Shown piece after piece: positions 14,246-59,375 of a DNA stretch of 64,000 nt (positions are counted from its first letter, which is position 1; the number at the start of each line of letters is the position of its first letter). Below the pieces are notes generated by a model, which was not told where the DNA came from, did no database searches, and saw nothing but the letters and a program-made list of their open reading frames with translations. Position numbers and translations under genes: made by a program. This DNA is from Amphiscolops sp. MND2022 (Eukaryota): positions 64,790,001-64,854,000 of the forward strand of contig OZ076415.1 of the NCBI GenBank assembly GCA_964187785.1. Reading direction: 5' to 3'.

Positions 14246-15390
14246 CTAGGTTACAAGAAACACAAATCTTGCAAAATTCTTCCGAAATTCTCGTCAACTT
14301 TGCATTTCTTACAAGAATCTTTTAAGTTTGTACAAGAATAGCAAATTTTTTCACATTTCTTACAAATTTCTGATAACAATTTTGCAAAAAATGCATTTTT
14401 TTTGTAAGAAGTTTTTACAAAGCAGCAAAAGGGTCCAAATTGTTAATTTGTCAATTTGTCCAAATTTTCTACCCCAAAAAATACTATAACGTATTCCAGC
14501 ATTGAAACATAACGTATTCCAGATTCTTCCGAAATTCTCGTCAACTTTGCATTTCTTACAAGAATCTTTTAAGTTTGTACAAGAATAGCAAATTTTTTCA
14601 CATTTCTTACAAATTTCTGATAACAATTTTGCAAAAAATGCATTTTTTTTGTAAGAAGTTTTTACAAAGCAGCAAAAGGGTCCAAATTGTTAATTTGTCA
14701 ATTTGTCCAAATTTTCTACCCCAAAAAATACTATAACGTATTCCAGCATTGAAACTCCGGACACAAATTCCGAGAACTCTTCAGCTAATGATGATTGGAA
14801 TATGAACATGGTACCAAATGAAAATACATTTCAAGGGCTTTCTAACGGTTCTAACCCAAACCTGCTGTCAGCTATTGTGATGGCGAAAATCAGTGAAAAT
14901 ACTACAAAACCACCTGTGCAATGGCATATTGAAAACTATAAAAACCCTGAAAATTCTATCAAAATTCAACCATCGGTTTCATTTCTTCCCCAGCCCGTTT
15001 CAACTAGTCAGGAGACTGCTGAGAATGGAGGAAATTGCTCTCTTAGATGCGAAAGCTTTACAGCAATAACGTCAAACAATGCGCATGGTGAAAATAAGGC
15101 ATTCCGATAATTTAAGATCCAGATGCTCTAATATGGGCAATTGTATCATTTTTCGCGTACAGATCGTTTTGCAACAGATCGTTTTGCAACATCTTTTGCA
15201 ACTGTTCAATTTTTTTGAGGTAGGAAATGAAAAAAAAGTCGGATTTATTCATTTTTGTAACATTCTGAGCAGAAATTTGCAAATCTTGCAAGATTTTTGC
15301 AAAAGTTAGATTCTAAAAATGCATTTTCTTACAAGATCTTAGAAGATCTTGTAAGAATTTTGCAAGAGTTGTGATTTTTGTGAACCTTGA
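14246..15390. mobile_element. TIR-bounded (MITE/foldback-like) element of the CTTGCAAG-rich family
   Basis: Left AGGTTACAAGAAACACAAATCTTGCAAAATTCTT vs reverse complement of right end AGGTTCACAAAAATCACAACTCTTGCAAAATTCTT; no TSD determined. Confidence 0.55.
14276..14755. repeat. Near-perfect tandem duplication, 247-bp period
   Basis: ATTCTTCCGAAATTCTCG starts at 14276 and 14523; CATTGAAA ends both units 247 bp apart. Confidence 0.95.
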
Positions 15391-42200: not shown

Positions 42201-45200
42201 ACCGTGAAATTTCGAACAGGGTGTCGCAGGCTGCCGCCTGTGATGGAAACAGCTACCAAGTGATGGTGAATGAGAACGACCTGAGATATATGCCAGGAAC
42301 ACTGCCACTTTAGGCCGCGTATACCGCTGATCTGCTGGGAAACTTAGTGCAAGACTTCTATTTTTTTTCACAAACAATTAGAATGTGAATTTATGCTATT
42401 ACGGACCGAAGGTCCACTGGTCTTAGTGTGACTTGTAGTACCAATTGCATTTTAGTATTCATTACATAGATATAGCATTCATTGTATTCTGTTTGTTGAT
42501 TTTATACGCTGCGCATGTACACTTTATATATATATTCACGTCTTTATGCTTGTGTATTCTACATGTAAACCAGTAGTGCAGAATGTATTAATTATCGATG
42601 AAATGTAGCTGTAATAATCAAGATAACTGGCAAAGTAAAGGAAACGCGTTCGAATTGTCCGCCGCGTTGGTCAATTCGAACGCGTAGTCCGCAACCTTAA
42701 TTAGCCAATCACATGCGAGCTTTCTTATTCACTTACTTGCTGGCCTTTGCGGCGACGCAAGTCATATTAGACTGCCGGTCCACTTATTGTCGGTGTATTT
42801 ACTTTGATGATTATTAATCTTAACTAAGTGCAATACTATTGGTGCATATAAGTATGAGCTCAGCACAAGTCTTGCTGTCATTAATATGAAAGGCGTACTG
42901 CCTCTTCCCCCCCATTTTCCTTCCTCTTTATCTATTTTTAGATCTAATACACGTAGAGATGCTAATTTTAGAATTACAGGAACATGTGACGTAAACTTCC
43001 CAGGGCCTTTTGCCCGTACTTGTGTCTATATTTAGTTTGACAGCATTACGTCATAGTGACGTTAGTATGTAAGTTGCTAATTTTAGTAACATGACTATAC
43101 ATATTACTGCATGTCATGATGCAAGGACTATAAATACGGGGACCACTAGTCCCAAGGGATGAATCTTGACGATTATTGATGATTACAAACCTACAACTCA
43201 CCGCTATCTATCACCATCAGTGTTCTAATCATTTTGAGACTACAAGTCAACCTTCGCTTTAGTAGACTGCTTTAGTGATATATCGTTCTGTTATTGTTTG
43301 AATACTCAGTTCAAGTTGGGATATTTGATACAAGCTCGAATATACTCTTACCTGAGCAAATATTTCTTCAATGCCTTCTACTAGAAAGCAAAGAGCTAAG
43401 GAAAGACGCTCTAGGCAATTAGACATCATGTCTGATACAGAAAACTTAGACGTAATGCTTGGATCATATCCAAGAAATGAATTAGGAAATGACTCTGATA
43501 GGGATGGTGAAATAGACCTAGGGTCAGATAGGACTAGAGGAGACCCACTGCAAAATAGTGAGGATTTCAGGTCACTTTTAAACTCAAACAGTAAAGAAAA
43601 TAGTGAATCGACGGTTGAGACTATGAGGCTCGTTAATTCTGAGATTACAAAGAAAATTGATGAACTGAGAAGAGAACTTAATTCTCAGCTGGTTGATGTC
43701 ATTAATTCAGCAATCACTGAAAAGGTTTTGCCTGATATTAGAAACTTGGTTTCCAACCAAAATCCAGTGTTTCGGGAAGAAGTGGACCAGAGGTCCAGTG
43801 GACTTAACAGGACCACCGAAGCGAAATTCGTTAAAAACGCTTGGAAAGGTAACTCAAAGCTTAATATGGCAACCAGTAGTCGACAAGACTACTTTAGGAG
43901 AAATTCAGAGAATTCTCAGTCTAGTGACGATGGTCATGAAGAAGACATTATGACCAATAGTCACGACATGGTGACAGGAGCCAAACCTACCCCTCGTACG
44001 GTTCCTGAATTCCTTACTGGACGGCCCATGCATTCCCGCGAAGAAACACAAAATTCCCATTCCCCACGAATTCAAACCTTAGAAAATGTCCCTCCGGTTC
44101 AGGAGACAGACGTCAACGATGGTTCAGACCCCATTAGGCGTCTTGCAGATGTGCTGGTCGGAATGAACAACAAATCATCAACGCAGACACTGATGGTAAG
44201 ACCTGTCAGCACTACTACATTGACGTTCGATGGCAAATCGGAGAAATTTGAACTCTTCGAAGATCTTTTCCATACTATGGTAAAGATGCAACCGGAAATG
44301 ACCGAGACCATGAAAATCAACCATTTCCACTCTTTGTTGAGGAAGAATGCCCTACAAACTTTCCGCAACATCAGCACCGCTAATAGGCAGACCTTGGAAG
44401 ATGTACTTGCAGTCTTCAGACGCAAATACGTCAAACCAGAATCCCAAGCAACTGCCAAACACAAATGGCACAAACTCGTGTTTGACCCAAACACTATGAA
44501 ACTGCCCGATTTCCTTGAAGAATTGAATCAGGGTGCAGAAAAAGCGTTCGGTGAGAACGCTCAAGCTATGATAGACAGCCTATTGTACGCCAAATTGCCT
44601 CCAAAACTCAAAAGATCCGTCAATATGGCAAGACTTGAAAATGCATCGTACGAGGAAATTGTCACTCATTTAGAACGTGAACTTGAGCTTAATGGACTTG
44701 AGGGAGGTGACGACATTCCAGTACCTACAATGTCCACTGCCCCTACAGCAACACGACCGGGCACTGGCCTCCTTTCATCGGGCATTGATCCCAATATCAC
44801 TTGCAATTATTGCAAAAAACCTGGCCACGTCAAAGACGACTGCAGGAAACTCAAACGAAAGGAGGAACAAAGGCGCAACGACGGACAGGATACTAAAAAA
44901 GAATATCCTAAATGCCCGACTTGCGGCAAAACAAATCACCCGGCGGAACGGTGTTGGAAAGGCGCCGGAGCCCACCTCAAGCCCAAGAACCTCAAACTGG
45001 AGGACGCCAAACAAGACGAAGCGTCCCCTGGACAAAACGAGACCAAGGATAAACAATCCACCTCAATATTAAAAAACTCAAAAAACTAGATTTGCCACGA
45101 CTCCAATTTAATGGAAAGTTACGAATTAGACAGTATATAATCTCTGACCCTTCTACCGTATTTTATATTGAATATTATTCTTCACTAAAGAAAACCTCAT

Positions 45201-48200
45201 CGGCTGACTGGCAGCAGCAAATGAGAAATACTCCTACTCAATTTTGCACTTCGGACCACAGGTCCGACAGACTTACCTCGACTACGGACTATATTCGATC
45301 CCTTCCTCTAATACCTGACTATAACCCTTATTACATTGACCCCGACTACGGCATTGACCCCTACTGGGACGCTCAAATCTACAATCAACACGAGCTGCAA
45401 TTTTACGCAAACTTTAACAAACCTCAAACTGAAATTGAACCCGACTGTCCCATGACAGACAGGGCTCTAAACCATACCTTGACCATAGCTCTAGTAGACC
45501 CCTGGCAAGCAAACCCCAATTCCTGTGTCCTACCAACACAGGAAGAACCAGACACCAAATTCAATTCTTTTGGACCACAAGTCTCTCTGACGTCAGCCGT
45601 CGAGGCAAGATTTGTAAACACACTGGTTACCAGAAATGGCGAGCCAGATTATGTTCCGCTCACAACCAATCTCGGACTCAAATACAAAAGACGTATGCTC
45701 TATTTTCCCATGGATTTTGGCGAACTTACATTAGACGGCCTTGTAGACACGGGTGCCCTATCTAGTGCAATCCCCGAAGCTGATCTACGTAAAATCCGAT
45801 TATTAGCCCCTCAGTCTATTGTCAAAGAGGGCCCAGCACCCAACTTCCAGATAATGGTAGCTAATGGGCAGCTGGAAACTCCGAAGAGCACCGTCGAACT
45901 TAAATTTGAGGTCGGCGATATAGAATTTCACGAAATTTTCATTGTAATGGAGAAACTAACAAGTCCGTTGATTGGCCTTTCATTCTTGCAACGAAACAAC
46001 ACCATACTGGACATGAGACAGGGAGTTCTAAATTTCCCATTTTTCTCCATGCAATTGAAAACAGCGGATCATAAGTACACAAACGTCATGGAGCCTATCT
46101 GTACACAGGAGGACATCACAATACCACCAAATGATAGACACCTAGTCACGTTAAGTTCCCAGATGTACGATGATACCACCGTTACTGGCATATTACAACC
46201 GAGCAATGCCCTCACTGAAGATGGAGACATCGCCTTTTGCGCGGCACTGGTCACATTGACCTCCGGTCAAGTTGAAATTCACCTGAATAACTTTACCGAC
46301 CACCCTTATACTCTCAAGAGAGGTTCTCACGTCGCCAACTTCTCTGTCATGACCCCAGGACAGATGAAGTATGTCAAACCTATAGATCCGGTGACCACAT
46401 GGCACCTTTTGCAGGACAATCCTGAAAATGCTGCATTTTACGTTAGCAGCTTGATTAAATCTTCTAAGCCAGAAGATTTTCGGGAAAACTATTGGTTTCC
46501 CACTCCGGAAGACCCCGGGGATCCACAACAACATACGCCGATACAAAAGCGCATTCTCACCGAACTCCTGAATCTACAAGAGCTAGAGAAGCTCAATCCT
46601 CAGGATGACCCTGAGTCCAGACGACGATTCCTGGCCAACTTCGATTGGACAGATTCTATGCTGCAATCAGATGAGATTACACGCATTGAAAATTTGCTAG
46701 TCGAATTCCATGATATATTCGCTAGACATCGATTCGACATAGGCATGAACGAGGAATTCAAGGTCAAATTAACCCCAAAAGACGATTCCCCGGCCTATAG
46801 TCAAAGTCTACCAACGCCTATTAACCTCAAGGAAGATATCCTCGTAGAACTGGCGCTATTACAACGATATGGGATCATAACAACTCTCCCATTTTCCAAA
46901 TATGCTAGCCCGAACTTTGCCCAAAAGAAACCCAATGGCAAATTGAGATTGCTGGTCGACCTTCGCAAGATTAACAATCTCATTTCGGATGATTACATTA
47001 ACAATAATCACCCCGTCAGTACACTGACCGATGCAGCCCAACATATGGCAGGCAAAAAACTATTTTGCAAACTAGATTGTTCGCAAGCATACCACTGCTT
47101 GCAGATGGCGGACCAACGGTCCATTGAAATGTTAGCGTTCAATTTTGCCAGCAGGACATTTGCTTACCGCAGGTTGGCGCAAGGACTCAGCCGTGCTTTG
47201 TCAGCCTTTTCTAGCTTTATGCGCGAATATCTTGACAAAGTTATTAAGGCTGACCAATGTGCTCAATATGTCGATGATATCGGCATTGCTGCAAATGACG
47301 CCGAACAACTCATAAAGAACCTGCGGGCCACTTTCCAATGCATCCGCGAAGCGGGATTGAAGCTCACAATGCACAAATGTCATTTCGGAGCGACAGAAAT
47401 CGACTTTTTGGGTCGAACGATCACGCCAGTCGGAGTACGTCCACAGCGACCACGAGTCCAAAATTTCCTAGAAAACACGAAATTCCCGAAATCAAAGAAA
47501 GCACTGCAGAGATACCTGGGATTTCTCAACTACTATCGTAACTATATTCCCAGGCTATCAGAGAGACTAACACCATTCTTCAAATTATTAAAGAATGATG
47601 AAAAAGTCCTAGTAACACCGGACCTATTGGAGAAATTTACCGATATCAACAAAGCACTTGACCGCTGTTGTGAATTAGCACTTAAACAGCCGCTACCGAA
47701 CAAGCAAATAGCCCTAATGACCGACGCCAGCTTTATGGCCGCTGGGTACGCAGTCCTAATTGAGGATGATCCACAAGAAAAATATACTTCAACGAGGAAG
47801 GCGTTTGCTCCGGTAGCTTACGGGTCAAAGACCTTTAGTCCCGCACAATTGAAAATGTCCATTTATGCAAAAGAATTCTTAGCCATATTCTTTGCGTTCA
47901 AGGAATTTGGACACATCTTTTGGGGGACGCCAAAGCCGGTAATTATACTGACCGATAACAAATCCGTCACGCGTTTTTTTCAAACAAAGATAATACCACC
48001 AACGTTGTGGAACGCATGTGATTACGTTATTCAATTTAACTTCACAATAGCACACATTCCCGGTAAAAACAACACAGCCGCAGACTACTTATCACGCCTA
48101 GAAATATCACCAAAAGAGAAATTGATTCTTCGCATCAGAGAAGATATTCCCACTACGCCAATTGAACTTCACGTCCAATCAGCAGGGATCACAGAAGAAG

Positions 48201-51200
48201 AACAAATCTTCTATACTGACGATGAAGATGAGACAGAAGAGCAAATCTGGCAAAGGAAGAAAAAATCACGAGACAATCCTTCCAATCAATTACCGGATAT
48301 TTCTTTTCAAAAATTTACCACTCATCACAGCAATTATCAAAAATTACCCATTTGTCAAAAACTAGCCAATACCAACACTGTGACTATAGAGCAAAACAAT
48401 GACGTTATACTACAACAACTTAAGCTCAAAATTCAAAAAGAAGAGTATTCTGAAACAATCTTGATACAAGATACAAGATATCAGCACTACCTACGCCAAC
48501 TAGACCGACTGTCCATTCAAAACGAAATCATCACGAGGCAGTATTACGACGAAACTGGCACTGTCAAATACAACCAAGTGCTCTTACCAAAACACCTAGT
48601 AACTGAATTATTAGAATCCCTTCACGGGAAGGCCAATCGCCATCCGGGCATTGCAAAAATGTTACAAGAAATTCGTTCCAAATATTATTATCCTGGAATA
48701 GCGAAAATCGTCCGCAAGTGGGTTAATGGATGTGAAACCTGCATAAAAGATAAAAGAACTCCAAATGAGTTAATAACTCCTGAGCTCCTCAATTTGCCAG
48801 AGTGGACTTTGGGTCCAGAAGACGCTATGCAAATAGACCTATTACCGAACCTCCCGCCGAGCGGAGGCTACGAAAATATTATTACTGCCATGGACGTTTT
48901 TTCACGTTACCTGTTCGCTTACCCAGTTACTGATGCTTCAGCTGCAAATACCGCTAAGGTCATTATCGACATCATGACCAAACATACGTATTTGCCGACG
49001 ACTTTGATTACCGATAAAGGATCAGCCTTCACATCAAAGTTAGTAGCTGAAATTGCGCAAATTTTGGGCATTCAAATTAAATGTGCGACGACGAAACACC
49101 CACAGACCATAGGAAAGCTAGAAAGAACTCATGCCAGTCTTAAGACTAACCTCAAAATGGCCTCAGGGGAGTATAGACGTCAGTGGCACAAGTACTTACC
49201 GTTAGCAGTCCTAAATTACAACACGTCCTACCACTCGACGTTGGGCTGCGAACCATCAAGGATATTTCATGGCCGCATACCGTACAATATTTTAGACCAT
49301 AAATTGGGGCTCAACCCAAACCCACAGGTCCTTCCCACCACGGACTTTGCTGAGGAATTCCAACGTAGATCACAGGTTTTGATTGATTCCACAAAGAAAA
49401 ATATTATGCAGTCTTATTTGAAGTACAAAGAATACTATGACCGAAAGGCCAAAGCAGCACCTTTGAAACTCAATGATTATTGCTTCATTCTACAACCTAT
49501 AGCTGACCATCAAGGATCAAAAATCCCATTTCGCGAATTCCGTTGGATTGGCCCTTACATTATCGAAAAAGTTTTACCAAACGATAATTATATAGTTCGC
49601 AAACTCAATTCCAACAAAACGCAAATTTTACACAGAATACGTCTCAGAAAATATGAGCCTAATACAGACTTACAGGACGTTCGCCCAGAAGGGAATTTAC
49701 AGCCAGACGATGAAATTGTCATTCCCCAAGATGATCTCTACGTAATCACGTGGGAAACGAACTTTGAGGACTTCGCGTCCACTCGACGTCAACCGACCTA
49801 CGAGCAATCAACTGAACGACCAGAAATTACGAGCGGCGAAGATACTAACTTCGACCAGCCAGATCAGATCTTGACCGATGTGGACCTACAGTCCACTAGA
49901 CATGACGAGACGGAAGAAACTCTTCCTGAGCGAATCATGCCCGATTCCGATAATGACTCAATTACTGGTGAGGAAACTTCATCAGGGGGGAGCGATACTA
50001 TCGTGCCCGAAGTATCAGAAAGCGAAAACGACGAAATGATTGTAGAAAATGAAAGCCCTAGAGGAGGGAGATATAACCTCCGTCCGAACCCTACCCCTAA
50101 TTACTCAGAAGAATACAGATACTAGTCAGAACATTTAATTACTACGTCCCAATTTTCTCTCTCTGCCCTTGAGGACATGTATTCTTTACTTGGGACTATT
50201 TTGACTTCACTTTATGACAATTAATAAGGTGCCGACAAACTGACTTAGCGACGAATAATAAAGCCACAAGCAACATTGGCAGAACAAAAGAAAATATGGA
50301 TAAATAGTTTACAGTCTAAAGTTCATATATGTGCACATTGTGTACAATTAGTCTTTACTGCCACACTGACGCAGACTCTTAGCAGTCTGGACCAATTCGG
50401 AATCTGACAAGAGATGAGTAGGACGGACATTCTTCTTAGGGTACTGTAGGGTACTGGGGGACTGCTGGACTGTGACAGTACTGGAAGCGCCCACCTTGCC
50501 AGCTTTGCTCTGAAGTCTGCGTTCAGGATCCAACTTCGACAAAATCTCAGTCCTCCCGAAATTGTCCAAACCCGACCACGGGTCATACGTGTCGCCAAGC
50601 GCAGTGCGACCGAAAGTAGACTCCATTTCGAGGAATTCGGAGATCGAGGCATCGCTGGTCACTGACTCAACTGGATTAACAGCTTGGCTAAAGAACGATT
50701 GCACTGGCAGCACTATGTCCACTAGCTTGCTGGTAGGATCATCCGTGTTGACAGAGCCGAACTTGACTGTCGGGAGATCTCTAAAAGGCTCATCTATGCA
50801 GAGACAAGCCAACTTGAAACAACTAAACAACAATGGACGTGTAGACAGAGTTGTTTGGCCCATGAGGAAATCAATTGTATCCTTGATCAATAGTGTAGGT
50901 TGATCGAACTCTGCAAATTTAACGCGCAACTCGTCGACGAAGGACAGGTACTCTTCATGTGCTGGGGCCTCTTGTTCTTGGGAAAAATACCCACGAAGAC
51001 GGAAGACGGTAAATAACTGACCGAAGCATTTCGTGGCCAGAGTGAGAGGCAACTTCAAGAGGATTTCCAGGTCAAAGCTGGCCAAACCTTGGGCGATGTT
51101 GGTGGTGAAATTGAAGTGACTACGCGTCTCTTTGAACAGATGAGTCACGTAACTCCTGGCCAAACGTCCAAATTCTTCCTTAGCCTTCTCTTTCAATGTG

Positions 51201-54200
51201 TCGATTGACGTCTTCTCTCCTTTCTGTTCATGCTGCTCAATCTCTGCTTTCAACTTGCAGGCATGGTCAAGTTTCGCTCCAAATTTGGTTCTGCTGAGAA
51301 ACACGGGGACGCTGAGGGCCAGAGCAGTTGTGGTATCCAGGTCCAAGATACTCGCGATGTCTTCTTCAGCAGGCAAAGCAGTGGGGAGAACAACGCGCTT
51401 AGCCAATTTGCGAAGGTAGAGACAAAGCTGTCGGAAGGAGTAGAAGGCCCTGTCTCGCCGGCCACTGAGACTGAGTGAGAAGTTGGTGGTGTCTGAAACA
51501 GTGAATCAACCATGAAACCAGATTATGCCTTAAAAGACCTATGGTCCCATTGTCGTAACTAGGACTAAGAGGATTTATTTTGGGACAGTCAAGCTTAGAT
51601 TGGAAATTCGACAAGGCGCAGCCCAGTTCCAGTCAGATGCATCCTATTGAATTATTATGAAGCCATGTGGAAACCAATGTGCAAGGAGAATTAGAGTACT
51701 AACAATCGCGGACAAGCTTCCCAAAGAACTCAAGTCTGCAAGGAAAGAAGTCATCGTGAATGATAGATCGTTCGAAGTTTTGGGGCTGAAAAGAAATGAA
51801 AGCCATCGAGATTTGCCCTACTAGGGACTATGAGTCTAGCTGTCGCAAATTGACCAACCTGGTGTCTGACTCCCTGCATTTGCTGTTGAGGTGAATGCTC
51901 GGAAAGGTAGGTGATCACCGTTTTCCAGTTAGCCATCAACTCCTGACACAATTTTGGGATTGTGGACACGTCAAGCTTGCAAGTTTTAGTGGCCTAAATT
52001 GAAAACCCCACGTCAAACCGGACCAAGCTTCGGGCGGTACTAGGCACGTAGACTGAGGGACTTACCTTAGTCAACTCAGGGGTGAAGAGAGTCCATTCCA
52101 TCTCTAGACTTCCACTCAGGCAGACAACCAAGTACTGTAACACTGAAAAGAAGTCAATGCGTCCAAACACGGAGAAACTGTCTTTGTGCATCAACTTCTT
52201 GATCGCAATCTCGTCGAAAGTAGTTGGTCGCTGTACCCCACGTCTGGTGAGTGGGGACCGATCTAACAGATGGACTAGGCCATATGTAGCCCCAGAGCAG
52301 CACACTAGATCAGCCTCAGCAGATATCGCTGCAAGAAGGGTAGACACAAGGCTGACTTCGGCTGATGTTTGTCCACTGGCCCTGCCGGTTCGCAGTAAGT
52401 AGACCCGGCACAATTTGTCAGCTTTCCAGAACCTGACGTGAAGCAAGAGGAAAACCCCCTGTGGTTCGAATTCTACAGAGAATTGTCCGGACGTCAGGAT
52501 ATCATTGCCAATGATTGGAATGATTTGTGTGAATAGATGATGGAACAACACCTTAAACACATCTTTAGATTAGTACGAACCGGAACATGTGCCCACTCAA
52601 GAACTATTGTTCAAATCATGGACTGTGACTTATCAAATCTAGTCAAGCTTGCATGATATAGGGATAGGACTAGAAGTCAATCAGACGTGAAGAGACTACT
52701 TACTGAGAGTCTAGTTGTGCTCCAGTCGATATCACTGGTGATGGCCTGATGATTCAGTGCAATGCCAATTTGTTGCCAGAGACCACGCAGGACTTGGACG
52801 TCTCCAGACAATGGTAAGAAACAGCCGAGCACAGAAATTTGCAGTCTGGCACGATTTTGCGGTGACGATGCCATATAATCCACGCCTGCCATTGCCTCGT
52901 CGTAGAATGGCAACTTCTCCCCAATGTCTACTAGTTCGCAGTTAATGAAGTGAGGCAGTTCCAGCTGGAGTTGATAATTGGAGAGCACTTTACCATCTTG
53001 ACCTCTCACTTGGTATCTGCGTCGCTTAGTAAGGGGGTCTTCAATAGTGAGGTACTCATACCTCCAGCGCTGATCTTTACGCAGATGACGCTCCGTCGCG
53101 AAATGTCGCAGGATTTCCTTTGGACCCTTTGCACGGATTGAGACATTGCACTTGCAGATCTGGCAGTAGATCTTGTGCTTGTTCCATTTCGGATCAACTG
53201 GCCCAGACACGAAAGTTCTAGTCCAAGGCATTGTCTCGAAGTACTCCTCCTTCATCACTCGGCCTATTCGTCTCCTGGGTCGTGCTTGGCCCCTAGGTCG
53301 AGTGCGAGATGAAGTTTGTCTCCGGGCTTGGCGTTGCTCGTTAATAGCCTCCTGTCTCACGTTGGCGAGGGTTTGAGCCCCAGGGCTGGACACGGCAGGA
53401 GAATGTGGGTCAGTCTCTAAGTCTACCTGTTGATTGCTGGCAGTGGTCGGAGGAGCAGGCATCGCTACACTTGATTGGAAGTCCGGTTGGGATTCAGCCT
53501 CACTGGTCATGCCTGAACTTGCGCCGCCTCTACGTGTGGAGTAGGTAGCTACGGAATCACTTCCGATATCTGTGTCAGTATCATGGCCAGACATCGAAGG
53601 AACACGCCTTCTAGAAGCAGTTTTTGCAGGACTACCCAAGTTCAATCGGCTCGCCCGTTCCACTACGCTGCTAAGCATCTCAAAAGACGCTCGGGCACTT
53701 TCGTCTGCTACAATTCTGAGGATGCTGGTAATTTGATCCTGATTTAGCGCAATGACAGGGTGTCCTGGATCAAGGCAGATAGGGTTTGTTTCTGTGAAAC
53801 ATTGTTTGATGATAACCCTGCTGGTACCTGACAACGGTGGCGGATCAGTGATGGGTGGCAAATCGGCAACGTTTGAATCATGACTAGATTCATCGCGGCA
53901 AGAAATCTCACGAACCTTTGCCGGGCAATACAGCGCTTGTCCCAAGGTAGACCTAGCCATAGATCCGGTGTCGGTCTCCATCTCAAAGCAAGAGTCTTCA
54001 TCTGTTTGGTACCGGTAGTCCATTGGCCCTTTGCTGACTTGCGGATCACCAGACCCAGAAGCATCGATCTCTTGTCTCTCTTCCTGTGCTCCTTGAAGGT
54101 TGGGAGTAACTTGCGGCTCCTCAAGGACTTGTTCCACTAGCCCTATGTTAGCAGGCTGAGACGGGCCCTCAGTGGTAGTAGCAACAACCCCGACTTCAGG

Positions 54201-57200
54201 ATTAGATGCCATCAGGCTTTGGTCAACTACTTTGCTTGCTGACGTAAGGTCCTGTCTTCCGATGGTGGTGTTATTCGTCCCTTCTTGCGAATCGGATTTG
54301 TCCAGGAAGACGACTCTAGGGACGCTTTCTGTAAGTTGGACTTCGGGGATCATCTCATTCAGCGCAGGAGTAACAGCAACCAACTCACTCACACTTGACT
54401 TTGCCTCAACAGGAATCTCAGTTGCACGACTAGCGGGATCTTGCTCAGCGCTCTCAAGCAACTCAGCTGTACGCCTGATGTAGGCTTCGCAGCTTTCAGT
54501 GTCCGTATTGGAAGACAGCTCAACTATAGATCTTATGTCCGTTGGCGACCCTCTGTTCTCAGACTCTAACATCTGTCCAACTGTTGGGGAGTCAATTTCC
54601 ATCTGTTCGGTGACGTTTTGTTCTGGTTGGCCGTCCATTTCTTTGCCTAAACGGAAAGAAATAAATTTTCGCGATCCACTTCCGTTAAAGAAATCCATCT
54701 TATCGCGTTTGAAAGACTTTCGAAAGCAAGCTTATTATTTGTTCATACCTATGGTTGAATATTTCACGATGGAGGAAGTGAAAACTAGTCAATGGGAAGC
54801 CCTGATCAAGCTCGAAATTGACAAAATAAGTTGAAAGAACCAACCTGATGTTTATCCAAATGGAGAACAGAATTGGTGGAGCAAGACGTGGCTGACTGAA
54901 AGGATTCTTGGTCTGTCCGAATCGGAGTAGTGACGCGAAGGATGAGCAGACTGAAACAAAGTCGTAAGACGGCGGATACTGTTGGAAGGGTGACCTATGC
55001 CAATTAGACTGCTAGTCCAATTAGTAGAATCTCGAGGAATGAACAACTTTGGACGGGAGTACTGTCAACAAGTTGGAATACTCGTAGAAGAATAGTTCAA
55101 TGTTGTCTAGGAGAAACAAGAAGGGTGAACTAGATGAAGAATTCTGAACCGAGATTGAAGTCTCAAAAGTGGACTCTACGTCGATCTAGGGACAATTAGA
55201 CCAGTAGTCCTGGAAACGAAGTCCAACGAGAAGATGTAACTAGAAGAACTATCCAAGCAGGAAATATTTTGTGCAGATTTGGGGATCTAAAACTGCTGTT
55301 GAATGATAGAATTAGAATTGGGAATGCAAAATGTAACAAAGGATTAACAATTTGAAAGTCGTACTGTGAACTGTGAAAATTAGCAAACTGGTTTACTATG
55401 CTTTACGGCAATTAGACTGAAAGTCTCACTTACAAGTTTTACTTCTTACCGTTCAACTTGACTCTCAAGACTGATTATTACTCAATCGTATTTTACGTTT
55501 ATTTCATTTACATCAAAGGACGTCGTGGCAAAATACAAGTCATTTATTATTACCAAAGCTATTAGCTCTTTTAATTACCTATACACTATGATCTTCAGTG
55601 TTACAGAACCTGCCAGTGATGTACATTCAGCAATCATTTCTTTTCCATTCCTTTGTTCCAGTATTAGAGTTACCATCATTACCATTATTAATTTCATCCA
55701 TTTATGCCATTTTACCATTTTCATTCAAATTCATTCAGAATTATTTATTCATTTATCAACACGCTCTGATTGGACAGTTGGTCTTTGCTAGCCGCTGAGA
55801 CCGACGGTCTTTGATGACACTTCACTAGTGTTAATGAGTGATGATAAACAATCTCATCACCCATTGTCACCTCTTCAATAGTTAATACAACCACTTGAGA
55901 TCAAACTCAAGCACTTATCAACTTTACAAGCGGCTGATCATCAAAACGAAATTGAGAAGGGAACCCGCTTAATAAGGAAATGTTAAGAAACCAAAGAGGG
56001 CTGCAGGGAAACTTTCCCTAACTTATTTTCCCGCGAATTTTCGACCCTCTGACCTAAGGTCGATCAGCCCGAGGTAGCCATTCTTCTGAATCTCAATCTA
56101 CAAATCAGCAGCTCACTTTCATACTCAAGAATTGCTAAGAAAATCTTACTAAAGAGATTTCAAACAGATATGTCTCTACAATTTGCAGTAGAAGATTTAA
56201 TTAGCCCCTTGGTTAGCCTGTCTTATCTATCCTCAGAGGAAGAAGACATGGACGTGGACGATCCACAAAAAGCCCCAGACGAGAAAGGTTATGACAGCGA
56301 CATAGAAGTGATCGCCTGTTACAGCGAGGCTCAGTCCACTCGACCATTGGGGATAGCGGGACGTGCCATGACCACTGAATTCACGGACGATGATGACTTA
56401 ACGCTACTGGAGGAATTGTATGGCAGGTCAATAAAGACGGACACAGAGCCCCCTAGCGACCTTGTAGACCAGATATTGGGCATTCACCCTCCTAGCTATT
56501 CCAGAAGACTCAGTCAGGAGCGACCCATTGCTGAGTGTGCAAGAATTAGCCCAATTCCAGACACCCCACTATCTCCACCTCCGCACGAGCAAGGGTGTAA
56601 TGTCAATAACGCTGGCAACCCGTGGTCAGATGATGACTTCCCTTATCAGCCCAAGAACGCACATATTACTGGGATTGCCATAAGCAACAGCGGGGTGTGT
56701 GGGCTGCCGAACCAAGTCGCCTTTGGGGACTGCATAGTGTGTGGGAAGTCTTTTGAAACAATACGAGAGGAGATCACCTTCAATTTTTTGGAGCAGACTC
56801 ACCTCGTGGGTGAGACGTACAATACCCGACTCAGACGAAGAAACGCCTTTCAGGCAGGAATGCTTGCAGGCTCGTTTACTGTCATCCCCCGGGGAGTGTC
56901 GCAGGCTGCCGCCTGTGATGGAAACAGCTACCAAGTGATGGTGAATGAGAACGACCTGAGATATATGCCAGGAACACTGCCACTTTAGGCCGCGTATACC
57001 GCTGATCTGCTGGGAAACTTAGTGCAAGACTTCTATTTTTTTTCACAAACAATTAGAATGTGAATTTATGCTATTACGGACCGAAGGTCCACTGGTCTTA
57101 GTGTGACTTGTAGTACCAATTGCATTTTAGTATTCATTACATAGATATAGCATTCATTGTATTCTGTTTGTTGATTTTATACGCTGCGCATGTACACTTT

Positions 57201-59375
57201 ATATATATATTCACGTCTTTATGCTTGTGTATTCTACATGTAAACCAGTAGTGCAGAATGTATTAATTATCGATGAAATGTAGCTGTAATAATCAAGATA
57301 ACTGGCAAAGTAAAGGAAACGCGTTCGAATTGTCCGCCGCGTTGGTCAATTCGAACGCGTAGTCCGCAACCTTAATTAGCCAATCACATGCGAGCTTTCT
57401 TATTCACTTACTTGCTGGCCTTTGCGGCGACGCAAGTCATATTAGACTGCCGGTCCACTTATTGTCGGTGTATTTACTTTGATGATTATTAATCTTAACT
57501 AAGTGCAATACTATTGGTGCATATAAGTATGAGCTCAGCACAAGTCTTGCTGTCATTAATATGAAAGGCGTACTGCCTCTTCCCCCCCATTTTCCTTCCT
57601 CTTTATCTATTTTTAGATCTAATACACGTAGAGATGCTAATTTTAGAATTACAGGAACATGTGACGTAAACTTCCCAGGGCCTTTTGCCCGTACTTGTGT
57701 CTATATTTAGTTTGACAGCATTACGTCATAGTGACGTTAGTATGTAAGTTGCTAATTTTAGTAACATGACTATACATATTACTGCATGTCATGATGCAAG
57801 GACTATAAATACGGGGACCACTAGTCCCAAGGGATGAATCTTGACGATTATTGATGATTACAAACCTACAACTCACCGCTATCTATCACCATCAGTGTTC
57901 TAATCATTTTGAGACTACAAGTCAACCTTCGCTTTAGTAGACTGCTTTAGTGATATATCGTTCTGTTATTGTTTGAATACTCAGTTCAAGTTGGGATATT
58001 TGATACAAGCTCGAATATACTCTTACCTGAGCAAATATTTCTTCAATGCCTTCTACTAGAAAGCAAAGAGCTAAGGAAAGACGCTCTAGGCAATTAGACA
58101 TCATGTCTGATACAGAAAACTTAGACGTAATGCTTGGATCATATCCAAGAAATGAATTAGGAAATGACTCTGATAGGGATGGTGAAATAGACCTAGGGTC
58201 AGATAGGACTAGAGGAGACCCACTGCAAAATAGTGAGGATTTCAGGTCACTTTTAAACTCAAACAGTAAAGAAAATAGTGAATCGACGGTTGAGACTATG
58301 AGGCTCGTTAATTCTGAGATTACAAAGAAAATTGATGAACTGAGAAGAGAACTTAATTCTCAGCTGGTTGATGTCATTAATTCAGCAATCACTGAAAAGG
58401 TTTTGCCTGATATTAGAAACTTGGTTTCCAACCAAAATCCAGTGTTTCGGGAAGAAGTGGACCAGAGGTCCAGTGGACTTAACAGGACCACCGAAGCGAA
58501 ATTCGTTAAAAACGCTTGGAAAGGTAACTCAAAGCTTAATATGGCAACCAGTAGTCGACAAGACTACTTTAGGAGAAATTCAGAGAATTCTCAGTCTAGT
58601 GACGATGGTCATGAAGAAGACATTATGACCAATAGTCACGACACAGGGTAGTCTCTGGTATTTTTGACGAACGATGACAGAATTGTGCCATGGCAGAGAT
58701 CAAAGAATCGAATAAAAATAAACTGTTTTCGAATTTGCTAAGGCCACAGTGGTGGTTTTCAATAATTTAGCAGAACAATTTGTTCTACCGCAAACCGAAA
58801 CACTCTTAGAGAAATTTAGAGCGACTTTCTCTTTGGCCAATTTTTTGTCATTTAGTATCCATAAATGTTTCTACAGATGAACAGGTCCTGAAAACGGCAT
58901 CCCGTAAGTTCAAAAACAGCGAAAACCTTTAAAAAACACGTGGACGCGAAGCAGGTGAAACAGTGGGGTGCAACAACAACAAGTTCCATATGTCTAATAC
59001 CAAAAAAGGAACTTTTTACAAACCACCCACCTTCCCCAATCCCCCACCCTCTTTCACACACACACACGCAGAAAATTCAGATTTTCAACATGTGGGGAGA
59101 TGGTTTTAGGAAAAACATGTCCATAAAAAGTTGTTAAAATAAATGTTTCCTTAGAACGTTTGAGTAGCTGTTGGTTTCACGATTCAGTGAGGTATCCTTA
59201 CTCAGCTCTGTTGTTACTCCATGGATGAGGGGGTGAGGGGGGTGATACTTGCCTGGAAATGAGGGTATATGTGAGGTCCAGCTGCAGAGATTCCTTCAAT
59301 CATGCTGTAGAGGAAGAAGATACCGACGCCCAGGAAAAGAACACTGCGGAAGTCGCAGTAACTGTCATTTAACAT
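27223..59375 (-). CDS. UNC-93-like / MFSD11-like MFS membrane protein, 8 exons: 59375-59253, 39301-39193, 37645-37498, 36254-36124, 35340-35213, 30934-30678, 29015-~28708, ~27449-27223
   Basis: All junctions are phase-compatible. The spliced peptide aligns by eye to MFSD11-type helices: VLFLGVGIFFLYS (TM1), GFNAGVMWTSVGKAITVHSD (cf. GIAAAVLWTAQGNCLTINSD), LLVGIGEIV (cf. IFIGIGEIL), FFGFYDCIIETEIY (cf. LLGFGDSCFNTQIY), AFAVYQF (cf. AFAIFKF). The last junction is least certain. Confidence 0.8.
29657..30141 (-). mobile_element. HINE/DINE-1-like element
   Basis: AACAAGCCGGGAAGGGCAAGGGTCGGCGCCATAACTGAGG ... GAAGCGCCGACTAAAAA. Confidence 0.65.
31960..34400. repeat. Diverged tandem array, ~185-bp period
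   Basis: Motifs such as TTTTTGTCAAA..GACTTCGTGGATTGGAATG..GGGTCAACAA..TTGTCCA..GAGATAA..AAATTGACACC recur at roughly 180-190 bp spacing (e.g. ~32463, 32649, 32840, 33025). Confidence 0.7.
35005..35157 (-). mobile_element. tRNA-derived SINE, same family as 11405-11590
   Basis: Minus strand TGGTGTAGTGGTTAGAGCATTCG..GTTCGAATC followed by the shared body. Confidence 0.75.
37193..37322. repeat. 22-bp minisatellite (GAAAACGTTATATCCGAACTTT) x~6, next to a HINE-type end at ~37410-37446
   Basis: Head-to-tail units seen directly. Confidence 0.9.
38328..38985. mobile_element. TIR-bounded MITE-like element, CTTGCAAG-rich family
   Basis: Left ATGCATTCCTTACAAGGATCTTGCAAG vs reverse complement of right ATGCATACCTTGCAACGATCTTGCAAG; AT-rich non-coding interior. 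Confidence 0.55.
39548..39877. repeat. Perfect 330-bp palindrome, 165-bp arms, no spacer
   Basis: Centre ACATG|CATGT at 39712/39713; ends GACTTGAATAC...GTATTCAAGTC; both strands give the same translation in the ORF track. Confidence 0.97.
40102..40463 (+). mobile_element. HINE/DINE-1-like element
   Basis: TTTTTAGTCGGCGCTTTTC ... GATATGGCGCCGACTTGGGCCGGTCCCAGCTTGTT. Confidence 0.7.
40812..41505 (-). mobile_element. HINE/DINE-1-like element with internal 147-bp tandem duplication (40928-41227)
   Basis: AACAAACCGGG..AGTCGGCGCTATATCTAAGG ... GAGTCGACTAAAAA; GGGAC motif at 40928, 41075 and 41222. Confidence 0.7.
42222..43968 (+). repeat. 5' LTR (1747 bp)
   Basis: Direct repeat of 56897-58643; TG...CA ends with TGTCG/CGACA inverted termini. 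Confidence 0.97.
43129..43135 (+). promoter_or_regulatory. Candidate LTR TATA box
   Basis: TATAAAT about 240 bp upstream of the gag ATG, downstream of several TGACGT/ACGTCA motifs. Confidence 0.5.
43371..45089 (+). CDS. gag: Gag, 572 aa, with the first 199 codons inside the 5' LTR
   Basis: Retrotransposon gag core (FDGKSEKFELFEDLF...) and two CCHC knuckles, CNYCKKPGHVKDDC and CPTCGKTNHPAERC. Confidence 0.95.
   Translation: MPSTRKQRAKERRSRQLDIMSDTENLDVMLGSYPRNELGNDSDRDGEIDLGSDRTRGDPLQNSEDFRSLLNSNSKENSESTVETMRLVNSEITKKIDELRRELNSQLVDVINSAITEKVLPDIRNLVSNQNPVFREEVDQRSSGLNRTTEAKFVKNAWKGNSKLNMATSSRQDYFRRNSENSQSSDDGHEEDIMTNSHDMVTGAKPTPRTVPEFLTGRPMHSREETQNSHSPRIQTLENVPPVQETDVNDGSDPIRRLADVLVGMNNKSSTQTLMVRPVSTTTLTFDGKSEKFELFEDLFHTMVKMQPEMTETMKINHFHSLLRKNALQTFRNISTANRQTLEDVLAVFRRKYVKPESQATAKHKWHKLVFDPNTMKLPDFLEELNQGAEKAFGENAQAMIDSLLYAKLPPKLKRSVNMARLENASYEEIVTHLERELELNGLEGGDDIPVPTMSTAPTATRPGTGLLSSGIDPNITCNYCKKPGHVKDDCRKLKRKEEQRRNDGQDTKKEYPKCPTCGKTNHPAERCWKGAGAHLKPKNLKLEDAKQDEASPGQNETKDKQSTSILKNSKN
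43969..43980 (+). other. Primer binding site, tRNA-Leu-like
   Basis: TGGTGACAGGAG directly after the LTR; 11/12 match to TGGTGTCAGGAG, the complement of the vertebrate tRNA-Leu(CAG) 3' end (from recall). Confidence 0.7.
45071..45086 (+). promoter_or_regulatory. Two tandem A-AAA-AAC -1 frameshift heptamers at the gag/pol junction
   Basis: gag frame ttA AAA AAC tcA AAA AAC TAG; pol is in the -1 frame and open across both sites. Confidence 0.85.
45092..50125 (+). CDS. pol: Pol polyprotein: protease, dUTPase-like remnant, RT, RNase H, integrase
   Basis: LVDTGA (PR), YVDDI (RT), MTDAS/EFLAI/LTDNKS/ADYLSR (RH), H..H..CETC plus QIDLL/TDKGSAF/KLERTH (IN), GPY motif; no chromodomain. Confidence 0.98.
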   Translation: MPRLQFNGKLRIRQYIISDPSTVFYIEYYSSLKKTSSADWQQQMRNTPTQFCTSDHRSDRLTSTTDYIRSLPLIPDYNPYYIDPDYGIDPYWDAQIYNQHELQFYANFNKPQTEIEPDCPMTDRALNHTLTIALVDPWQANPNSCVLPTQEEPDTKFNSFGPQVSLTSAVEARFVNTLVTRNGEPDYVPLTTNLGLKYKRRMLYFPMDFGELTLDGLVDTGALSSAIPEADLRKIRLLAPQSIVKEGPAPNFQIMVANGQLETPKSTVELKFEVGDIEFHEIFIVMEKLTSPLIGLSFLQRNNTILDMRQGVLNFPFFSMQLKTADHKYTNVMEPICTQEDITIPPNDRHLVTLSSQMYDDTTVTGILQPSNALTEDGDIAFCAALVTLTSGQVEIHLNNFTDHPYTLKRGSHVANFSVMTPGQMKYVKPIDPVTTWHLLQDNPENAAFYVSSLIKSSKPEDFRENYWFPTPEDPGDPQQHTPIQKRILTELLNLQELEKLNPQDDPESRRRFLANFDWTDSMLQSDEITRIENLLVEFHDIFARHRFDIGMNEEFKVKLTPKDDSPAYSQSLPTPINLKEDILVELALLQRYGIITTLPFSKYASPNFAQKKPNGKLRLLVDLRKINNLISDDYINNNHPVSTLTDAAQHMAGKKLFCKLDCSQAYHCLQMADQRSIEMLAFNFASRTFAYRRLAQGLSRALSAFSSFMREYLDKVIKADQCAQYVDDIGIAANDAEQLIKNLRATFQCIREAGLKLTMHKCHFGATEIDFLGRTITPVGVRPQRPRVQNFLENTKFPKSKKALQRYLGFLNYYRNYIPRLSERLTPFFKLLKNDEKVLVTPDLLEKFTDINKALDRCCELALKQPLPNKQIALMTDASFMAAGYAVLIEDDPQEKYTSTRKAFAPVAYGSKTFSPAQLKMSIYAKEFLAIFFAFKEFGHIFWGTPKPVIILTDNKSVTRFFQTKIIPPTLWNACDYVIQFNFTIAHIPGKNNTAADYLSRLEISPKEKLILRIREDIPTTPIELHVQSAGITEEEQIFYTDDEDETEEQIWQRKKKSRDNPSNQLPDISFQKFTTHHSNYQKLPICQKLANTNTVTIEQNNDVILQQLKLKIQKEEYSETILIQDTRYQHYLRQLDRLSIQNEIITRQYYDETGTVKYNQVLLPKHLVTELLESLHGKANRHPGIAKMLQEIRSKYYYPGIAKIVRKWVNGCETCIKDKRTPNELITPELLNLPEWTLGPEDAMQIDLLPNLPPSGGYENIITAMDVFSRYLFAYPVTDASAANTAKVIIDIMTKHTYLPTTLITDKGSAFTSKLVAEIAQILGIQIKCATTKHPQTIGKLERTHASLKTNLKMASGEYRRQWHKYLPLAVLNYNTSYHSTLGCEPSRIFHGRIPYNILDHKLGLNPNPQVLPTTDFAEEFQRRSQVLIDSTKKNIMQSYLKYKEYYDRKAKAAPLKLNDYCFILQPIADHQGSKIPFREFRWIGPYIIEKVLPNDNYIVRKLNSNKTQILHRIRLRKYEPNTDLQDVRPEGNLQPDDEIVIPQDDLYVITWETNFEDFASTRRQPTYEQSTERPEITSGEDTNFDQPDQILTDVDLQSTRHDETEETLPERIMPDSDNDSITGEETSSGGSDTIVPEVSESENDEMIVENESPRGGRYNLRPNPTPNYSEEYRY
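50348..54638 (-). CDS. Antisense five-exon gene encoding a hAT-transposase-derived protein (~1260 aa), probably catalytically dead; exons 54638-52704, 52551-52066, 51993-51859, 51785-51704, 51492-50348
   Basis: Four GT-AG introns (152, 72, 73, 211 bp) with matching phases 0,0,0,1 join the ORF fragments into one frame. Order of motifs: TTF/BED-like zinc finger (EEYFETMPW..YCQICKCNVSIRAKGPKEILRHFATERH), RNase-H-like core (QFSVEFEP..LLLHVRFW), ELMANWKTVITYL helix, RKLAKRVVLP, dimerisation-like RPLLFSCFKLACLCI. Confidence 0.85.
56170..56988 (+). CDS. Accessory ORF3, 272 aa, acidic and non-env; crosses the PPT and ends 92 nt inside the 3' LTR
   Basis: ATG-initiated uninterrupted ORF preceded by a branch-like TACTAA and acceptor CAG at 56165-56167; CxxC motif CIVC; no signal peptide or TM segment visible. 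Confidence 0.75.
   Translation: MSLQFAVEDLISPLVSLSYLSSEEEDMDVDDPQKAPDEKGYDSDIEVIACYSEAQSTRPLGIAGRAMTTEFTDDDDLTLLEELYGRSIKTDTEPPSDLVDQILGIHPPSYSRRLSQERPIAECARISPIPDTPLSPPPHEQGCNVNNAGNPWSDDDFPYQPKNAHITGIAISNSGVCGLPNQVAFGDCIVCGKSFETIREEITFNFLEQTHLVGETYNTRLRRRNAFQAGMLAGSFTVIPRGVSQAAACDGNSYQVMVNENDLRYMPGTLPL
56891..56896 (+). other. Polypurine tract (short GGGGAG)
   Basis: Purine run directly before the 3' LTR TG. Confidence 0.65.
56897..58643 (+). repeat. 3' LTR (1747 bp)
   Basis: Same length as the 5' LTR and no difference found in the segments compared; followed by TSD CAGGG. Confidence 0.97.
58046..58651 (+). CDS. 3' LTR copy of the gag N-terminal 199 codons, ending 2 codons into host flank (201 aa)
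   Basis: Identical translation to gag residues 1-199, then TG*. Confidence 0.6.
   Translation: MPSTRKQRAKERRSRQLDIMSDTENLDVMLGSYPRNELGNDSDRDGEIDLGSDRTRGDPLQNSEDFRSLLNSNSKENSESTVETMRLVNSEITKKIDELRRELNSQLVDVINSAITEKVLPDIRNLVSNQNPVFREEVDQRSSGLNRTTEAKFVKNAWKGNSKLNMATSSRQDYFRRNSENSQSSDDGHEEDIMTNSHDTG

Follow-up and report, generated by a model that had tools for sequence, protein, structure and literature searches.

HBZ is a small nuclear regulatory protein of the bZIP type encoded on the minus strand of a retrovirus; its gene has one intron and starts in the 3' long terminal repeat (LTR), and the main mRNA of that gene is spliced. In the Ty1 his3AI and L1 neoAI cassettes, an intron that runs opposite to the retroelement RNA is not spliced out of it and is retained in the new DNA copy. 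The Ty1his3-AI cassette is in use (PMC8074290), and the deltaretroviruses HTLV-1/2 carry the antisense genes HBZ/APH-2 (reviewed in PMC8622228). In plant Ty3/gypsy elements of the Tat/Retand type (Grande gene 23, RIRE2, Retand), antisense open reading frames (ORFs; aORF/eORF) located between pol and the 3' LTR are a familiar feature, their products carry PMD or Transposase_28 and the Grande antisense gene is transcribed from its own promoter (PMC11963269, PMC7264820, PMC4408406). A review on the plant aORFs urges a search for antisense and spliced transcripts. Here we analysed 64,000 nucleotides (nt) of Amphiscolops sp. MND2022 (assembly GCA_964187785.1, contig OZ076415.1, positions 64,790,001 to 64,854,000; hereafter the window), in which an LTR retrotransposon carries a minus-strand coding region at 50348-54698, between pol and the 3' LTR. 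An earlier note, made from the sequence alone, had proposed that this region is an intron-containing gene derived from a hAT DNA transposase. We read it as the conserved, spliced antisense gene of a young element, the product of which is most likely a nuclear, nucleic-acid-binding accessory factor acting in trans and not an active transposase, and we put the probability of this reading at roughly 0.7.

Exon-intron structure and conservation of the antisense gene

The minus-strand ORF pieces found by an ORF scan between pol and the 3' LTR measure 673, 188, 72 and 352 codons. Scripted joining of five minus-strand exons gave 3843 nt, or 1280 codons plus a stop, with zero internal stops. The four donor/acceptor pairs were located where the earlier note had placed them (52703/52552, 52065/51994, 51858/51786 and 51703/51493, in minus-strand reading) and they form one phase-compatible frame as it had claimed (phases 0, 0, 0 and 1), its length estimate of about 1260 residues being slightly low. 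The parts of the gene, in minus-strand order and with a slash at the exon-intron boundary, are the following.

54699-54874, minus strand: candidate 5' untranslated region (UTR) or core promoter, 176 nt, directly upstream of the ATG
52704-54698, minus strand: exon 1, residues 1-665, with a variable acidic/Ser-rich N-terminus, a conserved block from about residue 289, an Arg-rich stretch, a zinc finger and a helical region
52552-52703, minus strand: intron 1, 152 nt, phase 0, GTAAGT...TACTAAT...TTTAAG, donor TCA/GTAAGT at 52703
52066-52551, minus strand: exon 2, 162 residues, from splicing of the minus-strand sequence and the family alignment
51994-52065, minus strand: intron 2, 72 nt, phase 0, GTAAGT...ATTTAG, donor AAG/GTAAGT at 52065
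51859-51993, minus strand: exon 3, 45 residues, from splicing of the minus-strand sequence
51786-51858, minus strand: intron 3, 73 nt, phase 0, GTTGGT...TTTCAG, donor CAG/GTTGGT at 51858
51704-51785, minus strand: exon 4, 82 nt, from splicing of the minus-strand sequence
51493-51703, minus strand: intron 4, 211 nt, phase 1, GTTAGT...TTTCAG, donor T/GTTAGT at 51703
50348-51492, minus strand: exon 5, residues 900-1280 and the stop at 50348-50350, from splicing and phmmer relatives
50134-50139, minus strand: candidate poly(A) signal ATTAAA, a motif match about 210 nt past the stop

Retaining any of the four introns breaks the frame through a stop and/or a frameshift, and the TACTAAT of intron 1 is placed 17-23 nt upstream of the acceptor end at 52552.

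Nine other loci were fetched, namely L002, L004, L007 and L008 from the window's assembly (ERZ25074608, in which the window is on contig ctg184747), L003, L006 and L009 from ERZ1742291, and L005 and L010 from ERZ26696514. Absence from other copies, which would have counted against the gene, was not seen: it is present in all nine loci, in three assemblies and in subfamilies down to 24% protein identity. In eight of them a pol or integrase-type ORF lies on the opposite strand just downstream, tail-to-tail with the gene, and the ninth, L009, a contig of 2 kb, has the gene and an unassigned 65-residue ORF on the other strand. A conserved ORF antisense to gag-pol, located between pol and the 3' LTR, was confirmed as a feature. 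One flanking ORF among the fetched loci had a weak match to the animal-type CHGN domain.

Mapping of the spliced protein on these loci placed GT...AG at homologous codon positions in L008, L007, L004, L002, L003 and L006, with donors that are mostly GTAAGT, GTTAGT or GTGAGT and pyrimidine-rich YAG acceptors; in all, matching splice sites were recorded in seven other loci, and the copies sharing splice sites span 24-90% protein identity and three metagenome assemblies. Intron 1 drifts in length among copies (152, 151, 144, 95, 76 and 117 nt), and between the window and L008 the introns are 62-76% identical, compared with 79-82% for exons 2-4. Those exon-1 pieces of the family alignment that extend to the junction end in ...RLS/V(GT), and exon-2 pieces that reach the junction begin with ...FQ(CAG)/ and all end in ...PELTK/V(GT). 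Some relatives align across the junctions without an intron and without a gap: at junction 665 (intron 1) L005 and L010, at junction 872 (intron 3) P0134/L009, L005 and L010, and at junction 899 (intron 4) P0135/L006, L005 and L010. Junction 827 (intron 2) is interrupted at the identical position in every locus examined, the interruption in L010 being a 600-nt break in the tblastn match rather than a splice-site reading. In L008, a partly decayed copy with a frameshift in exon 5, the intron-2 donor is GCAAGA rather than GT (L008:7905-7975).

The copies from ERZ25074608 and L003 have four introns, L006 (780-2027) is without intron 4, and L005 (7593-11260) and L010 (822-3963) are without introns 1, 3 and 4. 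In L005 a GT-AG intron is present at position 2, with a possible extra interruption near residue 634. Intron number differs between sublineages: one has four, and the most distant of those sampled has a single intron or possibly two.

The pieces could instead be separate small proteins or chance ORFs. Prokaryote-style gene callers call each piece separately, and P0085, P0022, P0288 and P0291 read through intron 1 in frame, with the extra residues exactly at the predicted junction. However, exons 2-5 lack ATG starts, the GT...AG pairs keep their positions in the protein although the introns diverge in length and sequence, and homologues without the intron run colinear across junctions 1, 3 and 4, which makes this explanation scarcely credible. 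Conserved positions, drifting introns and intron-less colinear relatives are together the pattern of real spliceosomal introns, and the minus strand at 50348-54698 is accordingly described here as a predicted protein-coding gene of five exons and four introns that belongs to the retrotransposon.

Between the window and L008, codons 289-1240 differ by 0.086 at nonsynonymous sites (pN) and 0.66 at synonymous sites (pS), with pN of 0.049 in exon 2 and 0.054 in exon 5, whereas the N-terminal 288 codons evolve faster (pN 0.22, pS 0.59); gag and pol have pN 0.045 and pS 0.36, and all such ratios are approximate because synonymous sites are close to saturated. The ORF scan of the window gave no long sense-strand ORF across the antisense gene, so the constraint belongs to the minus-strand frame. 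Judged by these values, the antisense gene evolves under strong purifying selection, and passenger or decaying sequence is excluded at the level of codon divergence. The earlier note's view that the ORF pieces are exons of one gene kept intact by the element family is thus borne out by recurring GT-AG sites, by selection and by the relatives.

Another conceivable origin is a host gene that one copy transduced and that has since travelled with the element as a passenger, of no use to it. This would be compatible with the G+C content of the region (46-50%), which exceeds that of gag-pol and of the flanks and fits a foreign origin, and with a synonymous divergence unlike that of gag and pol. This origin is very improbable: the gene is present in nine of nine other loci and in subfamilies to 24% identity in three assemblies, with antisense pol adjoining in eight, purifying selection is as strong as on pol, and no free-standing cellular homologue was found among the relatives or in the profile searches. 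The pS of the antisense gene (0.56-0.71) is about twice that of gag/pol (0.36) between the window and L008 copies. Such unequal values suggest that modules may have been exchanged between subfamilies, or that the gene and gag-pol are under different mutation regimes.

The best-conserved non-coding stretch is the 176 nt upstream of the ATG, with 91% identity between the window and L008. Because this stretch is better conserved than the exons compared (79-82% in exons 2-4), it suggests a conserved promoter or 5' UTR of the antisense gene.

Domains of the product and the question of hAT ancestry

The 673-residue piece has 92 relatives, with 46-99% identity over the searched region, and the exon-2 piece has 45. 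The listed relatives of both pieces all come from ENA metagenome assemblies and are unnamed, one having a single unrelated Pfam match. For the exon-5 piece, phmmer returned 438 cluster representatives at E ≤ 1e-3 from a library that carries neither names nor sources. Intron-free ORFs of distant relatives are at L010:822-2144 and L005:8376-9278. Profile, fold and search analyses were run on the separate pieces and not on the whole joined protein of 1280 residues. Three domains were recognised.

53085-53177, minus strand: C2H2-type zinc finger CQICK...LRHFATERH, residues about 508-538, from Pfam, with a beta-beta-alpha fold in the model
52252-52485, minus strand: RNase-H-like unit beta1-beta2-beta3-alpha1-beta4-alpha2, residues about 688-765, from the AlphaFold model of P0085, with a predicted local distance difference test score (pLDDT) of 82-91
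50801-51460, minus strand: all-alpha C-terminal domain, residues about 911-1130, from AlphaFold

In the window pieces Pfam gives one weak C2H2 finger and no other family; the 55 C-terminal pieces of the family gave no consistent Pfam match, and the distant relatives gave none. Across the family, 32 of 69 members match zf-C2H2_ZN292 (best E 3e-5) and 20 of 69 the KIN17-type C2H2, so that the conserved CxxC...HxxxxxH finger is assigned by Pfam to these two and not to zf-BED. It is preceded by an Arg-rich stretch resembling a nuclear localisation signal (residues about 455-480).

The region from the zinc finger to exon 2 was modelled with AlphaFold on P0085, a member that reads through intron 1, with 69 sequences; the model is to be trusted only locally (mean pLDDT 61). 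Foldseek matches to it were led by the Hermes hAT transposase (8edg_A, E 3.6e-3 over 292 columns; 4d1q_G, E 9.9e-3), the Hermes matches as a group having probabilities of 0.93-0.97, 188-292 columns and borderline E-values of 0.004-0.08. They were followed by glucokinases, RNase H1, reverse transcriptase (RT) RNase H domains and the P-element transposase. No match reached E ≤ 1e-3 in this Foldseek search, and TM-scores were about 0.2. The exon-5 piece, modelled with 55 sequences, is all-helical with a mean pLDDT of 80, exceeding 90 at residues 11-230 (about 220 residues), and Foldseek retrieved nothing for it from the PDB (all E > 1) or from BFVD (best E 0.066, TM about 0.1).

In the RNase-H-like unit, the beta1 residue is Glu (E692) in 28 of 33 members and Ala or His in some. 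The end of beta4, where DDE enzymes have the second catalytic Asp, carries a conserved CCSG with no carboxylate, and the family alignment offered neither a canonical DDE triad nor an assignable third catalytic residue. Further acidic residues, E730, D762 and D798, are conserved. The product might be a catalytically active nuclease or recombinase and thereby supply the element with another enzymatic function, for instance that of a target-site nuclease or a processing enzyme with a non-canonical acidic site. The RNase-H-like fold, the nearly invariant E692, E730, D762 and D798, and the very strong constraint on exon 2 (pN 0.05) would suit such an enzyme. We consider it improbable, as the second carboxylate position is CCSG, the first is Glu and not Asp and is Ala or His in some members, and the element already has a full integrase and RNase H of its own.

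The earlier note saw in the protein the motif order of a hAT transposase, which implies that a class I element has domesticated a class II transposase made up of a BED-like finger, an RNase-H core of the DDE type, and insertion and dimerisation domains. In favour of this origin, the order of zinc finger, helical region and RNase-H-like unit, which we recovered, is that of the N-terminal two thirds of Hermes; Hermes chains give the top Foldseek matches with the longest alignments; and past the core there is a large helical region, which hAT transposases have too. The W-containing insertion helix and the C-terminal dimerisation-like segment that the earlier note had also named were confirmed by no tool. 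The structural match that it expected was seen in part, in the borderline lead of Hermes, with no match for the C-terminal domain, and the hAT-family profile match that it expected was not found in Pfam, in PDB profile searches and in a search of 5.8 billion proteins.

None of the hAT, BED, DUF4371 and Dimer_Tnp_hAT Pfam families was found in 124 members even at E ≤ 10, nor any hAT-related Pfam family in the distant relatives, and the hAT dimerisation domain PF05699 was found neither in 55 C-terminal pieces at E ≤ 10 nor in the distant relatives. PDB sequences searched with the family profiles A1, A2 and A3 (hmmsearch) gave no match, and neither did phmmer with an intron-free distant ORF. The A2 profile retrieved 72 matches from the 5.8 billion proteins, all of them unannotated ENA ORFs of the family and none with a hAT domain. 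The C-terminal helical domain had no match in the PDB to Hermes, the insertion domain of which is all-alpha with a conserved Trp and CxxH (Foldseek, all E > 1, with the model of the exon-5 piece). Terminal inverted repeats (TIRs) around the gene were limited to chance-level imperfect inverted repeats of 15-22 nt in 49900-56900, which is weak evidence because loss of TIRs is expected after domestication.

The N-terminal architecture and the top structural match thus favour a hAT transposase, and the sequence profiles, the C-terminal half, which is unlike the Hermes insertion or dimerisation domains, and the catalytic residues, with no acidic residue ending beta4, do not; glucokinase, RNase H1, RT RNase H and the P element stand close behind Hermes in the structural search. 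The product may descend from a hAT-type DNA transposase, a possible hypothesis with thin support against which the odds lean. The fuller scenario, in which an LTR-element lineage present in at least three sampled organisms or communities permanently recruited a hAT-like, catalytically altered, transposase-derived protein as a required accessory factor and propagates it as an antisense multi-intron gene, is tentative and on balance unlikely. Were it true, spliceosomal introns would here be gained or lost, in nature, within a replicon that passes through reverse transcription.

For the accessory factor that we favour, a course of events can be proposed. Because the introns are antisense to the genomic RNA, the spliceosome would not recognise them there; remaining unspliced, they would be copied by reverse transcription and inherited with each new insertion. 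Such persistence is in line with established retroelement biology, and the earlier note's statement that the antisense orientation lets the introns survive agrees with the established his3AI/neoAI indicator principle. The gene would be transcribed from its own promoter, for which the 176 nt upstream of the ATG are a candidate, and the transcript would be spliced and would end near the end of pol. Its product of 1280 residues would comprise a disordered, fast-evolving N-terminus, the Arg-rich stretch, the C2H2 finger, a helical linker, the RNase-H-like domain and a new all-helical C-terminal domain. The RNase-H-like domain is devoid of the canonical DDE triad. The product is most likely a nuclear, nucleic-acid-binding factor that helps the element in trans, possibly by activating LTR transcription, counteracting silencing or guiding integration. 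Four points weigh against this reading: transcription, splice junctions, promoter and poly(A) site are all inferred; the function is drawn from domain content only; the conserved E692, E730, D762 and D798 leave room for a non-canonical active site; and the RNase-H-like model is that of a 40%-identical relative with a read-through intron, confident only locally (mean pLDDT 61).

The retrotransposon that carries the gene

The LTR retrotransposon context given by the earlier note was verified through identical LTRs, a target-site duplication (TSD), gag and pol. The whole element spans 42222-58643 (16.4 kb) in a window sequence with zero N.

42217-42221, no strand: TSD CAGGG, 5' copy, directly before the 5' LTR
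42222-43968, plus strand: 5' LTR, 1747 base pairs (bp), 100% identical to 56897-58643
43371-45089, plus strand: gag, 572 residues, with its ATG inside the 5' LTR, DUF1759 (E 1e-6) and a CCHC knuckle
43969-43986, plus strand: sequence resembling a primer-binding site (PBS), TGGTGACAGGAGCC..., adjoining the 5' LTR and inside the gag ORF, a candidate from its position and TGG start
45092-50125, plus strand: pol, open frame of 1677 residues with gag-asp_proteas, RVT_1 (E 1.6e-23), RT_RNaseH, Integrase_H2C2 and rve (Pfam)
56170-56988, plus strand: ORF3, 272 residues, acidic, without a known domain, between the antisense gene and the 3' LTR and extending 92 nt into the latter
56891-56896, plus strand: short purine tract GGGGAG, a putative polypurine tract from its position before the 3' LTR
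56897-58643, plus strand: 3' LTR, 100% identical to the 5' LTR
58644-58648, no strand: TSD CAGGG, 3' copy, directly after the 3' LTR

Repeat comparison within the window detected the LTRs as a direct repeat of 1748 bp with 100% identity (42221-43968 / 56896-58643), and reading of the ends gave LTRs of 1747 bp each, TGTCG...CGACA, with a short terminal inverted repeat. The TG...CA ends, the direct repeats and the 5-bp TSD (4-6 bp being accepted) agree with the criteria for LTR elements, and the pol domains are in the Ty3/gypsy-type order of protease, RT, RNase H and integrase (Pfam). Given the identical LTRs, the TSD, gag and the ordered pol domains, the element is a complete, very recently inserted Ty3/gypsy-type LTR retrotransposon. 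We also considered that the 1748-bp repeat might be an artefact of tandem elements, as gag starts inside it, and rejected this since the TG...CA ends and the TSD agree with one insertion.

The gag frame opens with an ATG about 600 nt into the 5' LTR and takes in the PBS-like site (43371-43986), an unusual layout that recalls Ty1; as a consequence the 3' LTR holds a 201-codon gag stump (58046-58651). The length of the gag ORF is kept in L002 and L004. No tRNA gene was found in the window as a match for the PBS. Between protease and RT, pol residues 336-419 (46097-46348) have a weak dUTPase match in Pfam (E 0.0019, under the curated cut-off). ORF3 is kept as an ORF in L008, L007, L004 and L002 (61-29% identity), with pN 0.25 and pS 0.76 between the window and L008.

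The G+C content is 46-50% in the region of the antisense gene (window 50001-54000), 42-45% in most of gag-pol and 34-39% in the flanking genome. The AT-rich flanks contain tandem repeats at 14276-14755 (unit of 247 bp), 32375-32891 (196 bp) and 40902-41230 (147 bp), and no ORF of more than 175 codons was found in the window outside the element.

Comparison with known systems

LTR retrotransposons are usually viewed as intron-free gag-pol machines. The locus suggests that spliced genes of the ordinary eukaryotic kind can persist in them over the long term, provided that the gene is antisense. Lineage-specific presence and absence of introns within a retroelement bears on intron gain and loss, and such genes are split up or hidden where annotation is prokaryote-style or repeat-masked. 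The gene also defines a new, unannotated family of proteins of 1280 residues, the last exon of which alone matches the 438 cluster representatives, and it may be an instance in which a class I element makes use of a protein of class II type (an RNase-H-like transposase).

The product resembles hAT transposases (Hermes, Ac, Tol2) and domesticated proteins of the ZBED/DAYSLEEPER type in its N-terminal zinc finger, helical region, RNase-H-like unit and large helical region. It differs from them in having no hAT Pfam domains, C-terminal dimerisation domain, conserved DDE or TIRs, and in a helical domain that is unrelated by Foldseek.

In the engineered his3AI and neoAI cassettes the intron has the direction of the element and runs opposite to the marker gene; in the natural arrangement described here the predicted introns have the direction of the cargo gene and run opposite to the element. 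HBZ/APH-2 are, like the present gene, spliced minus-strand genes borne by a retroelement, and the nuclear location is here a prediction. In contrast with HBZ, the present gene would encode a zinc-finger/RNase-H-like protein of 1280 residues, with four introns, from a wholly internal region and an apparent internal promoter.

The closest parallel in arrangement is offered by the plant Tat/Retand elements, which share a family-wide antisense accessory gene, a long region between pol and the 3' LTR and a product presumed to be nuclear and DNA-binding. The present product is much larger (1280 residues) and has no PMD or Transposase_28 (PF04195) domain by Pfam; its gene has four conserved introns, whereas the word "intron" is absent from the two papers on plant antisense aORFs whose text was searched for it. 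The host is, so far as one can judge, no flowering plant. Our literature searches turned up no LTR retrotransposon with an antisense gene that is hAT-like or has several introns. The earlier note's impression that the arrangement was undescribed therefore holds for the multiple introns and not for the antisense accessory ORF as such, which the plant Tat/Retand elements also have. The placement of the antisense accessory ORF is of a known type, and the presence of several introns in such a gene is the new feature relative to the literature searched.

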